Shown here: positions 26,561-63,074 of the stretch, piece after piece
Position numbering within the stretch: position 1 is the first letter of the stretch
Layout of the letters: each line of letters starts with the position of its first letter
DNA from: Octopus sinensis
Lineage: Eukaryota
Direction: 5' to 3'
Assembly: GCF_006345805.1 (NCBI RefSeq)
Contig: NC_042999.1
Span: forward strand, 154,442,001-154,506,000
Length of the DNA: 64,000 bases
Made by a program: the position numbers and the translations under genes
The notes under the pieces: model-generated
The model's input: only the letters and a program-made list of their open reading frames with translations
Told to the model about the DNA's origin: nothing
Databases searched by the model: none

Positions 26561-26717
26561 TAAATATTATTTTATTTTATATTATATATATATATATATA
26601 TATATAATATATATTGATAAAAATTGTAAGACAACAAAAGAATAAAAGAGACCGCGATATTATGTAAAAGAGGAATTTATCTGTAAATGTAATATGTGAC
26701 AATTACTAGGTAACCAT

Positions 26718-26781
26718 GATAAAACTCCGAGTTTGGGATGCCGAGGTGGAAATCCACGCCGCCGCCATCTCTTCAGTTATC
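26718..26781 (-). ncRNA. Type I hammerhead-like motif (G12>C in this arm)
   Basis: GATAA-CTGAAGA-GATG..CATC-C-CAAAC-TCGGA-GTT-TTATC. Confidence 0.5.
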
Positions 26782-26809
26782 CGGCCATAGCATTTTTTCC
26801 GATGGCCGA

Positions 26810-26869
26810 ATAACTGAAGCGATGGCGGCGTGGATTTCCACCCCGACATCCGAAACTCGGAGTTTTATC
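26810..26869 (+). ncRNA. Type I hammerhead-like motif (A9>C in this arm)
   Basis: ATAA-CTGAAGC-GATG..CATC-C-GAAAC-TCGGA-GTT-TTAT; the consensus of the two arms restores CTGAAGA/GAAA. Confidence 0.55.
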
Positions 26870-26939
26870 ATGGCTATCGAATAATTGTCACATATTACAT
26901 TTACATATATATATATATATCAACATGTGATCTCTTGAG

Positions 26940-27145
26940 CACCACCAGCAAAAATATTTTTTCCTCTGTCTTCCCTTCTTGGGATCTTTCCTTCTCCTTG
27001 TTTCCGACGAAGAGCTCCGCTCGAAACGTTAAACCCTCCTTCCCTTCTTTCCTGAGCGTCAATAATACTTTAATTGTTCCACGTCCTCGCGTTGCTGTGT
27101 TTTTTTCTCTTTTTTTTCTGTGTTTTCTTGTTTGGATTAACTATA
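26940..27145 (+). mobile_element. Family D1 repeat with minimal hammerhead-like motif at 27000-27034
   Basis: GTTT-CCGACGA-A-GAGC-TCC-GCTC-GAAAC-GTT-AAAC; ends in (TA)n. Confidence 0.72.
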
Positions 27146-27899
27146 TATATATATATATATATATATATATAGGTTAGCCGCGAATACTCAGTTAGCAGTG
27201 CCGGATAAAATCATGAGTTGCGCTTTGGCAAGATATAACACGCTATTGCCGGTGAAGTCCTGAAGCTCTGAAATGAGCGAGAATGCCACTATTGTTTGTA
27301 AGAAGAATGGTTAGAGAGAATGAAATGCAAAGCATAAAAAATACTTTTGTCTCTGGATTTCCACTTTACACAAATTACACTTTTATGAATCTTGGTCTAG
27401 AATATCCATCAGTTTCACTGGCACTGCAATCGTGTACAGGACATGCTACCATTATATGCCTTATGGTCATATTTAGACTATTTTTAATCATAGTCTTATT
27501 CGAGTTGGGTCGCCTCGACCCTAAAGACAAAATCGAACGAAACTGAGAATTGTTTTCTTGTTCACAAAATTTCTGATATTTCTTTATTTCTCTTGAAAGT
27601 CTAATACAAAGAAGCAAATAGCAAATGTCGACATTTTCTGTTTGACATTTCAAATAACAGTAATAATTGATGTGTGATGGACAGACTTTTTCTTCTGTTT
27701 AGTTTAAAGAGGAAAAAACAATATGGAGTTTTTGAGAGATTCATGCTCTCCCAAGTGTATTAGCAACGTAATAGAAGTGAAATGGTTCCAAGAGAGAATC
27801 GAAGGTCAGATTGTGCGCTCACTTCACCGACAACGTATCAGTCTTTCATATTACATTACAAAGGTAATCTAGAGAACAATATCGTTGATGTTGTTGTCG

Positions 27900-28070
27900 T
27901 TATTATTATTATTATTATTATTATTATTATTATTATTATTATTATTATTATTATTATCATTATTATTTTGCTTCCTTTTTTTTTCTTCTTTCAAATTTGC
28001 TTCCATTTCTTGCCGAGTGTCTTCCCGACTCCTAGGGCAAAGAAACTCATAGTATACATTGGTAGGCTAT
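27900..28070 (-). mobile_element. (TAA)n array with attached ~100 bp candidate LINE 3' end
   Basis: Minus strand reads ...GGAGTCGGGAAGACACTCGGCAAGAAATGGAAGCAAATTTGAAAG...(TAA)n. No ORF evidence. Confidence 0.35.
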
Positions 28071-58590: not shown

Positions 58591-58694
58591 GTGTGGTGTG
58601 TATTATATGTGTATATATATATGTGTGTATATATATATGTGTATGTAATATATGTGTATATATATATGTATATATATATATATGTATATATATC

Positions 58695-59450
58695 AAAATG
58701 TAACCACATGTGAATCGTTGGCGATTTTCAACCTCTGTCTTCCCTTCTATTAGACTTTCCTGTGTTTCCGAAGAAAAGCGTCTGCTCGGAACGTTAAACC
58801 ATCTTTCTTTCCTTCCTTTCGTTCGTTTATCGGACTCGTCAAGACAAAATCAAAATTATTTTGTCTTGACGAGTTCGACAAACAAACGAAAGCGCTAATG
58901 AAGAATGACCCCGCAAAAACAAACGCAAAAACAAACAGCACTATTTTTCTGGACTGCCATGTTAGCTTGGCGATAACTATTAATATATATATATTTCTGT
59001 GTTCCTTTCGTGAAAGAGCGTCGGCTCGAAACGTTAAAGACTTTTTTCACTTCCCGAGCGTTATACTAATACATCTATTTATTGTCTACACCATCTGTCT
59101 TCGTCTTTGGTTTTTTTTTGTGTGACTGAATTCTCCTATATATATATATTATATATATATATATTATATATATATATATATATATATATATATATATATA
59201 TATTGATCGCCCATGTTGATTCGCTAGCCTCTGCACGCATATATATTTTTCTCTCCTTCTTTCTGTGTTTTTTCTCTGTGTATCTTTCTGTTGAAGAGCG
59301 TAGGCTCGAAACGTTAAAGACTTGTTTTATTTATATGTTCCTGAGCGCCATACTAATACAATTGTTTGTTTGTATTCCACCTACCTTCGACTTTTGTTAT
59401 TTCCGTAAACCTGCCTTCGTCTTTTTTTTTTTTTCTAAAGCTTCCCGTTA
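58695..59450 (+). mobile_element. Cluster of hammerhead-motif repeats: D1 (58695-58810), mini fold-back G (58818-58902), MITE half (58941-58983), two tandem D2 units (58985-59135, 59235-59450)
   Basis: Best D2 motif at 59283-59320: TCTTT-CTGTTGA-A-GAGC-GTAG-GCTC-GAAAC-GTT-AAAGA. Confidence 0.7.
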
Positions 59451-59539
59451 TATATATATATATATATATATATATATATATATATATATATATTATATAT
59501 ATATATATATATATATATATATATATATTATATAGAAGG

Positions 59540-59590
59540 AGCTTCTACAGGACTAGAACTGTTTCATTCAAGAGAAATCTTCAGGAAGCT
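59540..59590 (-). ncRNA. Type I hammerhead ribozyme motif (mirror of 62931)
   Basis: Exact reverse complement of 62931-62981. Confidence 0.72.
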
Positions 59591-62500
59591 AGTTAACAAG
59601 AATTGTATTGGCATTTATACATTTAGGCAGTTTATAGGGGTGGTGGTGGGGGACTTTTTGGGGGTAGGCATAGCGCAAAAATCATACTTGGGGGAGTGGT
59701 CAAGGAGTCAGTGGTAAATTGATAGAAGAATAAATAAAAGAATAAAAAAATAAAAAAAGAATTAAAAAAATAAAAATATATATGAAGAATAGAGTTTTAG
59801 GTAATAAGGAAATTCTCAACACACACCATATACATACACACATACATACACACACACCCATATAAATATATATATATATATATATATATACACACACACA
59901 CATATACATACATATATCTACATATATTATATATATATATACCTATACATACATACACATATACATGCATATACATATCACAACACACTGTATATATAAC
60001 ACACACGACCACACATACACATACACACAAAAATATATACATACACACACACACACATACTCACATACACACACATATCCACATACACACATGCACAACA
60101 CACACACAAGTCCCTATATACTCATATATACATATACACATATATTGTATGTATGCATACACACACACACACATATATATATATATATATAATACATACA
60201 TATGTGTACCCATTCATACACATATATGTATGTATACACACACACACACATACATATATATACACATACATACATACATATGTGTACCTATTCTACCTAC
60301 ACATACACACATATATACATACAATTACAAACCATTCCCTAATTTTAATTTTATTATCTTCATTTATTACTTTTGTTATCTTTGACCGCTGGTCACAAAC
60401 ATCTTGGCTAGTCCCTTTTATCTTCTACTTGAGCACAAGCACTCACTCACGCACGCACACTCATTAGCACGCACACACACTCTCATCGTACACTCATACA
60501 CATACACGCACGCACGCGTTATATTCATACATACATACATCTACATACATACACGTATATACACATACATACGCGTACCTACAGATTCATGTCTACAATC
60601 TTAGAAGACTAGTCTATACATATACACCAAATATATATACACACATACATATACACCTACATACAAATACATACATACATATATATACACACATATATAC
60701 ATATACATACACATATACACATACACATATATATATATATACATATATATATATACACATATATACATACATATACATATATATATATACACACATCCGC
60801 ATACATACATACATACATACACCCATACATATATACACACATATATACACACATACATACACCCACACGTATACATATACATACATATACGCGCATGCAT
60901 ACACATACAAATACATACACATACACATATACATATACATACATACATATATACATATATATATATATATATATATATATACACATACATACACATACAT
61001 ACATACATATACATATATACACACACACATACATACACATATACACATACACGCACATACACATATACATGCATATACATACATATATATATATATTATA
61101 TATATATATATATATATACATATATATATAGCACATACATACACACATACACATACACACATACACATATGTACACATACACACACATATTCACATATAT
61201 ATATATATATATATATATCTCTATATATATATTACATATATATACACACACATATATACATACATACATACATATATATATATATAGAGAGATATATATA
61301 TATGTGAATATGTGTGTGTATGTGTACATATGTGTATGTGTGTATGTGTATGTGTGTATGTATGTGTATATATATATATGTATATATATATACATATATA
61401 TATATATATATGTATGTATATGCATGTATATGTGTATGTGCGTGTATGTGTATATGTGTATGTATGTGTGTGTGTATATATGTATTGTATGCATGTATGT
61501 GTATGTATGTGTTATATATAATATTATATATATATATATATAGTATATATGTATGTATGTATATGTATATGTGTATGTGTATGTATTTATATGTGTATGC
61601 ATGCGCGTATATGTATGTATATGTATACGTGTGGGTGTGTGTATGTGTGTATATATGTATGTATGTATGGGTGTATGTATGTATGTATGTATGCGGATGT
61701 GTGTATATATATATGTATATGTATATGTATGTATATATGTGTATATATATATATGTATATATATATATGTGTATGTGTATATGTGTATGTATATGTATAT
61801 ATGTGTGTATATATATGTATGTATGTATTTGTATGTAGGTGTATATGTATGTGTGTATATATATTTGGTGTATATGTATAGACTAGTCTTCTAAGATTGT
61901 AGACATGAATCTGTAGGTACGCGTATGTATGTGTATATACGTGTATGTATGTAGATGTATGTATGTATGAATATAACGCGTGCGTGCGTGTATGTGTATG
62001 AGTGTACGAATGAGAGTGTGTGTGCGTGCTAATGAGTGTGCGTGCGTGAGTGAGTGCTTGTGCTTAAGTAGAAAGATAAAAGGGACTAGCCAAGATTGTT
62101 GGACCAGCGGTCAAGATAACAAAAGTAATAAATGAAGATAATAAAATTAAAATTAGGGAATGGGTTTGTAATTGTATGTATATATGTGTGTATGTGTAGG
62201 TATGAATAGGTACACATATGTATGTATGTATGTGTATATATATGTATGTGTGTGTGTGTGTATACATACATATATGTGTATGAATGGGTACACATATGTA
62301 TGTATAATATATATATATATATATATATATGGTGTGTGTGTGTGTGTGTGTATGCATACATAAGTGTATATGTATATATGAGTATATAGGGACTTGTGTG
62401 TTGTTGTGTGTGCATGTGTGTATGTGGATTGTGTGTGTATGTGAGTATGTGTATGTGTGTTTGTATGTATATATATTTTTTGTGTGTATGTGTATGTGTG

Positions 62501-62930
62501 GTCGTGTGTGTGTATATATACATGTGTGTGAGTATATGTATATGCATGTATATGTGTATGTATGTATATGTATATGTATATATATATATATATATATATA
62601 TATGTAGATATATGTATGTATATGTGTGGTGTGTATAATTATATATATATATTTATATGGGTGTGTGTATGTATGTGTGTATGTATATGTGTGTGTGTTG
62701 AGAATTTCCTTATTTACCTAAAATCTCTATTCTTCTATATAATTTATATTTTTTATTCTTTTTTTATTTTTTATTCTTTTATTTATTCTTCTATCTAATT
62801 TACCACTGACTCCTTGACCACTCCCCCAAGTATGATTTTTTTTGCGCTATGCCTACCCCCAAAAAGTCCCCCACCACCACCCCTATAAACCTGCCTAAAT
62901 GTATAAATGCCAATACAATTCTTGTTAACT

Positions 62931-62981
62931 AGCTTCCTGAAGATTTCTCTTGAATGAAACAGTTCTAGTCCTGTAGAAGCT
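62931..62981 (+). ncRNA. Type I hammerhead ribozyme motif
   Basis: Helix I AGCTTC/GAAGCT (6 bp); CTGAAGA 62937-43; helix II TTTC/GAAT (3 bp, 10.1-11.1 mismatched); GAAA; helix III ACAG/CTGT; predicted cut after GUA at 62975. Confidence 0.75.
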
Positions 62982-63074
62982 CCTTCTATATAATAAATTA
63001 ATTTTACTCTGCTATGTATTGAGTACCTTATTTACTGTGGTTAACCCAGAATCAACCCGGGACCTACATATATA

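Follow-up and report, generated by a model that had tools for sequence, protein, structure and literature searches.

Fold-back repeats without open reading frames at (TA)n microsatellites of Octopus sinensis resemble insertion units of Penelope-like elements

Insertions of Penelope-like elements (PLEs) often gain an inverted copy at integration; this copy is adjacent and 5′-truncated, and a tail of 30-40 bp accompanies the insertion, often at one end only (Craig et al. 2021, PMC8557442). Naiads and almost all Hydra-clade PLE families prefer (TA)n as the target, the targeting of microsatellites has been tied to a zinc-finger linker, and Octopus species harbour Naiads, which are PLEs without canonical hammerheads (PMC8557442). 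Purified PLE protein cuts both strands of the target and extends them; it begins reverse transcription at two internal sites adjacent to each other, and the stretch in between is the tail (Frangieh et al. 2024, PMC11167929). In this study, a 64,000-nt stretch of the Octopus sinensis genome (assembly GCA_006345805.1, chromosome CM016861.1, approximately 154.4-154.5 Mb; hereafter the window) was analysed for inverted repeats, here called fold-backs, which lie between (TA)n tracts and carry no open reading frame (ORF). With a probability of roughly 0.78, these fold-backs are insertion units from several families of small ORF-less retroelements mobilised in trans by PLEs with an endonuclease (EN+ PLEs) or by Naiad-type relatives.

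Non-autonomous PLE derivatives are already on record, namely MRC1 of the Chlamys group (PMC8557442) and the animal retrozymes (PMC7229834; preprint 10.64898/2026.07.22.740005). PLE integration is still poorly understood, and the 2021 and 2024 papers list the origins of inverted copies, tails, and the microsatellite bias among the points still to be explained. The octopus units show these insertion features in minimal form, as two equal arms and one tail.

Fold-backs were detected by self-BLAST of the window, and each sequence was then read directly. A preliminary description, made from the window alone, had listed five palindromes, E, B, F, C, and H, each with inverted arms and an unpaired tail on one side, between (TA)n tracts; all five were present at their places with this layout, having tails of 68-99 nt and loops of 1-43 nt. 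E (26614-26905) has arms of 107 and 105 nt, a loop of 12 nt, and an arm identity of 88%; its tail is on the left (26614-26681, minus strand, 68 nt unpaired), with the sense-strand 3′ end joined to the left (TA)n, and the remaining fold-back (26682-26905) has its right end on (TA)n. In the other four the tail is on the right, on the plus strand, and ends on (TA)n. B (28820-29174) consists of a fold-back at 28820-29082 (arms 123 and 125 nt, loop 15 nt, arm identity 92%) and a 92-nt tail at 29083-29174 with the terminus ...CTACCCTTAATTAATTT. F (29911-31066) consists of a fold-back at 29911-30978 (arms 511 and 514 nt, loop 43 nt, 97%), delimited by self-comparison and direct reading, and an 88-nt tail at 30979-31066 ending in ...TTCCCTAATATTTTAT. 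C (52662-52983) has its fold-back at 52662-52884 (arms 111 and 111 nt, loop 1 nt, 94%, the outer arms being identical) and a 99-nt tail at 52885-52983, which contains an 8-bp hairpin and ends in ...CTACCCTAAATTGATTAA. H (59531-63068) is the largest, with a fold-back at 59531-62990 (arms 1713 and 1723 nt, loop approximately 24 nt, 93%) and a 78-nt tail at 62991-63068 ending in ...GGGACCTACA. The interiors of the H arms are mostly low-complexity sequence; between 59800 and 62700 this is of CA/TA/ACAT type and is mirrored between the 1.7-kb arms at 93%.

Five additional fold-backs were found, one in the window and the others elsewhere in O. sinensis. The survey covered approximately 190 kb of this genome in all; the other DNA, approximately 130 kb, came from loci chosen around helicase paralogues. 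Locus L001 is identical to window 28173-48829. G (window 32603-32815, minus strand) has a 56-nt tail on the left, arms of 76 and 78 nt, and a loop of 3 nt, and lies between (TA)n and (CATA)n. M (L003 8016-8454) has a tail of 113 nt, N (L004 5356-5608) one of 149 nt, and P (L004 17687-18205) one of 71 nt, with arms 98.5% identical by BLAST; O (L004 12414-12610) is an old copy and probably a fold-back. The architecture thus recurs with at least nine different sequences. Arm orientation was assigned from the tails, the solo copies described below, and the strand of the hammerheads; on this basis, all nine clear fold-backs have head-to-head arms with the 3′ ends outward and exactly one tail. Loops range from 1 to 43 nt, arms from 45 to 1720 nt, and tails from 56 to 149 nt, and both arms stop at a common inner point whatever their length. 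Arm identity is continuous, from approximately 100% (C outer arms) through 97, 93, 92, and 88% down to approximately 70% (O, I, and J). Self-comparison revealed no internal direct repeats in the fold-backs.

The window is AT-rich (G+C 27-44%) and contains 112 (TA)≥5 tracts, which make up 3.5% of its length. For a random interval of the sizes of E, B, F, C, and H, the chance of having (TA)n on both sides is approximately 0.002. Eight fold-backs (E, B, F, C, H, M, N, and P) have (TA)n at both flanks, each with this chance of approximately 0.002, and because of this double flanking the architecture is considered real and not a chance pattern.

Three solo copies without an inverted partner show how the elements end. 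A copy of the outer 95 nt of the F arm (window 26455-26549, minus strand, 94% identity) and a copy of the G arm (window 58941-58991, plus strand, 96% identity) both have the 3′ end on (TA)n; they stop at the tail-less arm terminus and are cut off on the inner side. On another chromosome (L003 8749-8879), the last 53 nt of the H arm are followed by the complete 78-nt tail at 98.5% identity; the terminus ...GGGACCTACA is identical to that of H and sits inside (TA)n. The three solos therefore have a fixed 3′ end and a variable 5′ end, which is the expected product of target-primed reverse transcription. Since the H solo carries the tail and the F and G solos lack it, both 3′ termini are used, and the tail and the fold-back are each optional. 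The preliminary description had held that non-palindromic copies elsewhere would speak against it; the H solo is such a copy, and it tells against an obligatory fold-back and fits mobilisation by PLEs.

The sequences of the elements are largely unrelated, as had been proposed, with some exceptions. The B and C tails are similar along their entire length (z score 7.3) while their arms differ, and B and M are distant kin (z 5.6), collinear from the outer arm into the tail. The M tail has the terminal motif in common with B and C, otherwise showing only weak collinear similarity to B. For E, F, H, N, and P, no relative was detected among the other fold-backs, and a profile of the B and C tails matched only B and C in all DNA examined. 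Tail-like motifs within H (60336-60420) were dropped as candidates, being not collinear with the B/C tail and missed by this profile. In B, C, and F, the final 8-13 nt of the arm are similar to the end of the tail of that element (motif CC(C)TWAAT), and the similarity is weaker in E; none of 265 permuted arm-tail assignments scored as high. Such a similarity fits a pair of alternative 3′ end sites that carry a shared local signal. Reading the CCCTAA in the tail ends as a telomere repeat was abandoned, as only a single unit is present and nothing else supports it. A significant hairpin was found in the C and G tails only, being absent from the tails of B (the homologue of C), F, H, and E. B and C each have an 8-nt inverted match, offset, between the left end and the tail end.

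No reverse transcriptase (RT) or GIY-YIG domain lies inside or adjoining the fold-backs, the window coding only for a Pif1 fragment and an RT fragment of the long interspersed nuclear element (LINE) type. The fold-backs are therefore not PLEs themselves and are at most PLE-mobilised. Stop-free translations of the elements gave no match to the protein collection, and metagenome contigs scanned for the exact pattern of the H arm/tail junction did not contain it.

A motif scan of all octopus DNA examined detected a GIY-YIG signature in L004, which belongs to a decayed PLE with a C-terminal EN (14827-13520, minus strand) that is frameshifted and 5′-truncated. The remnant shows the RT motifs GTAMGTRFAPVYAN, RYLDDCF, and LPFLD, a CX4CxxC zinc-finger linker (CNDSRCGTC), and the GIY-YIG motif LIYCIKCPNCEEIYVGQT with a typical C-terminus. 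Pfam scores for its pieces were weak; its conceptual protein aligned at full length with mollusc proteins of 600-700 aa containing RVT_1 and GIY-YIG (E down to 1e-132). Downstream of its 3′ region, the nearest microsatellite is a (TA)n at approximately 12725-12790. No intact octopus PLE was found in the DNA examined. The closest intact relative is represented by L008 and L009, independent metagenome contigs sharing 99.97% identity, and has ORF1 and a 698-aa RT-EN ORF. In both contigs the 3′ untranslated region (UTR) runs straight into (TA)n, and L008 has a hammerhead 88 nt before the 3′ end (caCCUGAAGA-u-cguc-uaugaa-gacg-u-GAAA-guac-UA/gugaau), with a helix I of 6 bp and a palindromic helix III, AGUACU; its core and position are like those of the F and H motifs described below. 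An Argonauta PLE copy (L010) was set aside as a comparison because its 3′ end is ambiguous.

L004 also contains a tandem array at 3499-5346, with 3.3 units of 561 nt at 98.6% identity, adjoining fold-back N. A canonical type I hammerhead (CUGAUGA, helix III ACGUACGU) is present in every unit, and the 3′ end of the array, ...AGCCCTTTTATATAAT, is joined to (TA)n and has a terminal motif of the type seen in the B, C, F, and M tails. This array has the retrozyme layout. A single (TA)n tract can host several distinct insertions: the F solo stands beside E in the tract at 26384-26612, M beside the H solo in L003 8450-8750, and the tandem array beside N in L004 5330-5630. The (TA)n microsatellites serve as nests for elements of this class.

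When compared with described systems, the fold-backs are closest to the insertion units of EN+ PLEs (Neptune, Nematis, Naiad, and Hydra), sharing with them an abutting inverted copy, a tail at one end, the (TA)n target, and 5′ truncation, as well as two alternative 3′ termini and, in some families, a hammerhead that lies upstream of the 3′ end. They differ from these units in having no ORF and measuring only 0.2-3.5 kb as a whole, in having copies of equal length that form a near-perfect hairpin, in the lack of a hammerhead in most families, and in showing no sequence link to an autonomous PLE in the DNA examined. Animal retrozymes without long terminal repeats (LTRs) are likewise AT-rich, non-autonomous elements presumed to rely on PLEs (Cervera and de la Pena 2020, PMC7229834; Li et al. 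2026, 10.64898/2026.07.22.740005); their type I hammerhead has a short palindromic helix III, as in F, and the L004 array is a genuine example from the same genome. Retrozymes, however, are head-to-tail arrays with a hammerhead in each unit, whereas the fold-backs are head-to-head pairs, mostly without one. The Chlamys PLE derivatives, such as MRC1 of Chlamydomonas, are ORF-less with PLE-style termini and resemble autonomous elements only at the 3′ end (PMC8557442), and the tail module shared by B, C, and M behaves like this 3′ end. Elements of the MRC1 type are from a green alga and have direct pseudo-LTRs, a head-to-tail multicopy arrangement, and no (TA)n targeting, in all of which the fold-backs differ from them. 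Helentron-associated interspersed elements (HINEs, also called DINE-1; PMC4067079) combine an inverted repeat with a one-sided 3′ extension and internal microsatellites, as in H, but their TT target with T-runs, subterminal repeats of 12-15 bp, conserved stem-loop at 8-35 bp from the 3′ end, and rolling-circle features were not found in the fold-backs.

The anatomy, the (TA)n flanks, the fixed 3′ and variable 5′ ends, the presence in this genome of PLE remnants and of elements with hammerheads, and the B/C tail module are direct observations; the identity of the mobilising enzyme and the origin of the second arm are what we infer from them. The PLE GIY-YIG endonuclease would cut within a (TA)n tract, and the target DNA would then prime reverse transcription at one of two sites close to the RNA's 3′ end, the distal start site giving an arm with the tail and the proximal site an arm without it. 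In many events, an inverted second copy would be made concurrently, yielding (TA)n, arm, short loop, arm with tail, and (TA)n. Because the arms share the inner end point and one tail in all nine fold-backs, the second arm was probably templated on the first cDNA, or joined end-to-end with it, by template jump or snap-back and not by a separate insertion, its end possibly being captured at the proximal site; independent priming with free choice of start site would be expected to give unequal arms and some symmetric products. Some families would have retained a PLE-type hammerhead upstream of the proximal 3′ end, clearly in F and in decayed form in E and H. The fold-back priming proposed in the preliminary description stays one possibility for the origin of the palindrome, another being the route with two cut strands and two start sites (PMC11167929). 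Its assignment to non-autonomous elements of PLE or retrozyme type at TA microsatellites fits the solo copies, the L004 PLE, the L004 array, and L008/L009.

Several observations weigh against mobilisation by PLEs. The octopus tails are 56-149 nt long versus 30-40 nt in published PLEs. Six of the nine fold-backs have no hammerhead, and the motifs in E and H fail the formal descriptors. No similarity was found between the fold-backs and the 3′ ends of the L004 remnant or L008, so that no autonomous partner is at hand in the approximately 190 kb; alignment of the element 3′ ends to the 3′ UTR of the intact PLE (L008) was not significant. Symmetric products, with two tails or none, were absent among the (TA)n-flanked fold-backs, and no family was found twice as a fold-back in the same approximately 190 kb. 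Target-site duplications are unreadable within (TA)n. The H arms, 1.7 kb long and mostly microsatellite-like, would also make an odd RNA template.

Within the same class of retroelement, the palindrome may already be present in the source gene, in which case hairpin RNA (arm-loop-arm-tail) would be made from a master copy of each family and copied whole, and the solos would be 5′-truncated copies starting inside the second arm. Such a source would account for arms that end at a common central point at any length and for the lack of a second fold-back of any family in the approximately 190 kb, and every solo is compatible with truncation in the tail-proximal arm or with the proximal start site. 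It is nevertheless unlikely, since arm identity declines continuously from approximately 100% to approximately 70%, as if the arms were born identical at each insertion and then decayed, reverse transcription through a perfect RNA hairpin of 100-1700 bp is unfavourable, and published PLE insertions receive their inverted copy during integration (PMC8557442). Quite improbable are DNA transposons, either as TA-duplicating (Tc1/mariner-type) MITEs (miniature transposable elements with inverted repeats) or as Helentron-derived HINEs, the latter having 5′ and 3′ subterminal inverted repeats and a 3′ extension of 40-60 bp with a stem-loop (PMC4067079). The inverted repeat with a one-sided 3′ extension recalls HINEs (PMC4067079), the 8-nt inverted match that B and C show at their two ends and the significant hairpin in the C and G tails would suit a DNA transposon, and the window also contains a remnant of a Pif1-type helicase (37.4-39.6 kb). 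For HINEs, however, the element ends abut (TA)n with no TT target and no consistent T-runs, the tail hairpin is missing in B, F, H, and E and so is not shared by the B and C tails, although these are homologous, and the repeats, which measure 45-1700 nt, begin at the very end and are not subterminal inverted repeats of 12-15 bp. For Tc1/mariner-type MITEs, terminal inverted repeats at both extreme ends are lacking, the match at the tail end being at most 8 nt and offset; of the signature of DDE-type transposons raised in the preliminary description, the terminal repeats were thus not found, and a TA duplication is unreadable within (TA)n. The three solos with a precise 3′ end and truncation at the other, the hammerheads in sense orientation, and the like 3′ junctions on (TA)n in a bona fide PLE and in the hammerhead tandem array also argue against DNA transposons of either kind.

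A non-mobile origin, by assembly artefacts (chimeric long reads with missed adapters) or by replication and repair accidents at unstable (TA)n, is suggested by the fragile and cruciform-prone nature of (TA)n and by the large size and low complexity of H. It is very improbable, since the arms have diverged by 3-12% with clean and reproducible termini, the H tail terminus is repeated on another chromosome in a non-palindromic copy, F and G have dispersed partial copies, and the B and C tails are homologous despite different arms; local accidents would copy flanking DNA, as opposed to unrelated sequence whose 3′ end is defined.

TA targeting, one-sided tails, and inverted 5′-truncated copies are described in PMC8557442, so that the form is not as new as had been supposed. 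The signature is a known one of PLE-type insertions; ORF-less, hairpin-like families seem not to have been described explicitly before, and known kinds of mobile element are left unaltered by these units. What goes beyond the published picture is that the arms are co-terminal (loops 1-43 nt) and that exactly one tail is present in 9 of 9 fold-backs. Tentatively, and with more doubt than belief, this asymmetry across at least nine ORF-less families may record an undescribed obligatory step of PLE integration, in which the first cDNA would start at the distal site and the other (TA)n end would then capture, at the proximal site, the arm made by jump or snap-back. In that case, the octopus (TA)n tracts would hold a large unannotated class of hairpin-forming PLE parasites, which would be possible sources of hairpin RNA. 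A genome-wide set of such units could reveal the start of reverse transcription, the turning point of the second arm, and the 3′ motif recognised by the enzyme. Standard annotation pipelines would see them as MITEs or hairpins, and octopus annotations probably file them under unknown repeats, unclassified short interspersed nuclear elements, or inverted-repeat DNA elements.

Hammerhead motifs were sought with a strict type I descriptor (exact CUGANGA and GAAA, closed helix II, a helix III both short and closed, UH, and a helix I with 3 bp or more). Only one match was obtained in the window, where 0.07 was expected, and it lies in the right arm of F (30790-30853, plus strand), reading cac CUGAAGA, helix II, GAAA cgaucg UA/gug, with the helix III palindrome ACGATCGT. 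The mirror copy in the left arm (30034-30097, minus strand), which was read directly and folded, has a helix I down to 2 bp. Such a helix III, short and palindromic, characterises the hammerheads of metazoan PLEs; these are believed to work as dimers (PMC4209133). E has hammerhead-like motifs in the left arm (26718-26781, minus strand; CTGAAGA ... CAAA, G12 mutated) and in the right arm (26809-26869, plus strand; CTGAAGC ... GAAA, A9 mutated), that is, one core mismatch per arm at different positions. With a helix I of 5 bp, a helix II of approximately 12 bp, a near-palindromic helix III (ACTCGGAGT), and an extra unpaired C before GAAA, the E motif matches none of the descriptors applied and is read as a decayed relic. 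The H motif (62937-62975, plus strand; CCUGAAGA-u-uuc-ucuu-gaa-u-GAAA..., mirrored at approximately 59546-59584, minus strand) has an exact core and a helix II of 3 bp closed by U.U, with no helix I beside the cleavage site; it is similar to the motif of the intact PLE (L008 3316-3348), and from its sequence this hammerhead appears doubtful or degenerate.

No hammerhead core was found in B, C, G, M, N, or P. The hammerheads proposed earlier for E, F, and H thus hold as canonical in F, while the E motif is decayed and the H core is without helix I, and the view of the ribozyme as part of the shared architecture has to be given up, as it is clear in one fold-back, decayed or doubtful in two, and absent from six of nine. 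F alone among the three is convincing, the ribozyme lies outside the common architecture, and since most fold-backs lack it, it is dispensable for this style of insertion. As the preliminary description had noted, the motifs face outward near the arm ends, at 15-125 nt inside, and exact cores in the fold-backs occur only in the sense orientation as set by the tail, with none in antisense. A check against Rfam, which had been recommended, gave no hammerhead in the window at the gathering threshold or at E ≤ 10; this silence means little because Rfam also misses the hammerhead of the bona fide PLE L008. A descriptor modelled on the L008 hammerhead found 12 cores in 214 kb as compared with 0.95 in shuffled sequences, one set of these cores being that of the L004 tandem array.

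Two more repeat families bear minimal hammerhead-like blocks. Copies of fam1 are at window 26941-27120 (plus), 49960-50119 (minus), 3562-3713 (plus), and 58732-58817 (plus), one of them directly right of E. The block reads gtttCYGANRA-a-gagc-...-gctc-GAAA-cg-UU/aaac with 1-2 core changes per copy, from which an ancestor with a canonical CUGAAGA is plausible. Copies of the related fam2 are at window 59201-59440 (plus), 12206-12360 (plus), and 58996-59047, one being just left of H, and at L004 14795-14910 (minus), L006 11546-11624 (minus), L003 18875-18916 and 19959-19998 (minus), and L002 12736-12785. Its visible 3′ ends (window 59440 and 12360, L004, and L002) are joined to (TA)n, and the 5′ starts vary. 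The fam2 block is similar to that of fam1; core position 6 is never the canonical A and mostly U (e.g. CUGUUGA), so that it is probably not an active hammerhead.

Other hammerhead-like and fold-back structures were also present. Element K (window 32870-33340), flanked by (TA)n, has 25-nt inverted repeats approximately 240 nt apart in a layout unlike the fold-backs, and includes at 33265-33307 (minus strand) a near-perfect hammerhead with one inactivating core change (CUAAUGA), a helix II of 5 bp, and the helix III palindrome AATCGATT. Near-hammerhead sequence is also present at window 8912-8960 (minus strand; CCGACGA ... GAAA ... UC/, helix I of 7 bp) beside LINE-related inverted repeats, and a canonical-looking hammerhead (CUGACGA, helix I of 6 bp, helix III palindrome ACAUGU) at L005 18774-18822 (plus strand) of O. 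sinensis. Two older fold-backs at window 33430-33885 and 46541-46947, with approximately 75% arm identity, share an arm segment (...AACATGGCAGTCC...) with G and are related to it (z 15-21); the one at 46.5 kb is without (TA)n flanks and has no obvious tail.

The coding remnants of the window are a Helitron-type Pif1 helicase at 37378-39570 (plus strand, ORF 38119-38826; Pfam PIF1, E 1e-23), with many paralogues of 76-84% identity annotated in O. sinensis and O. bimaculoides, and the LINE-type RT fragment at 6422-6984 (minus strand; RVT_1, E 1e-7). The latter is bracketed by 255-bp inverted repeats (6166-6420 and 8471-8725, 94.5% identity, 2 kb apart), which do not lie at (TA)n and lack the fold-back architecture. 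Large direct repeats of 97-98% identity, unrelated to the fold-backs, are present at 1-1224 and 2296-3525, at 57339-57983 and 57967-58601, and at 31501-31828 and 45952-46281.

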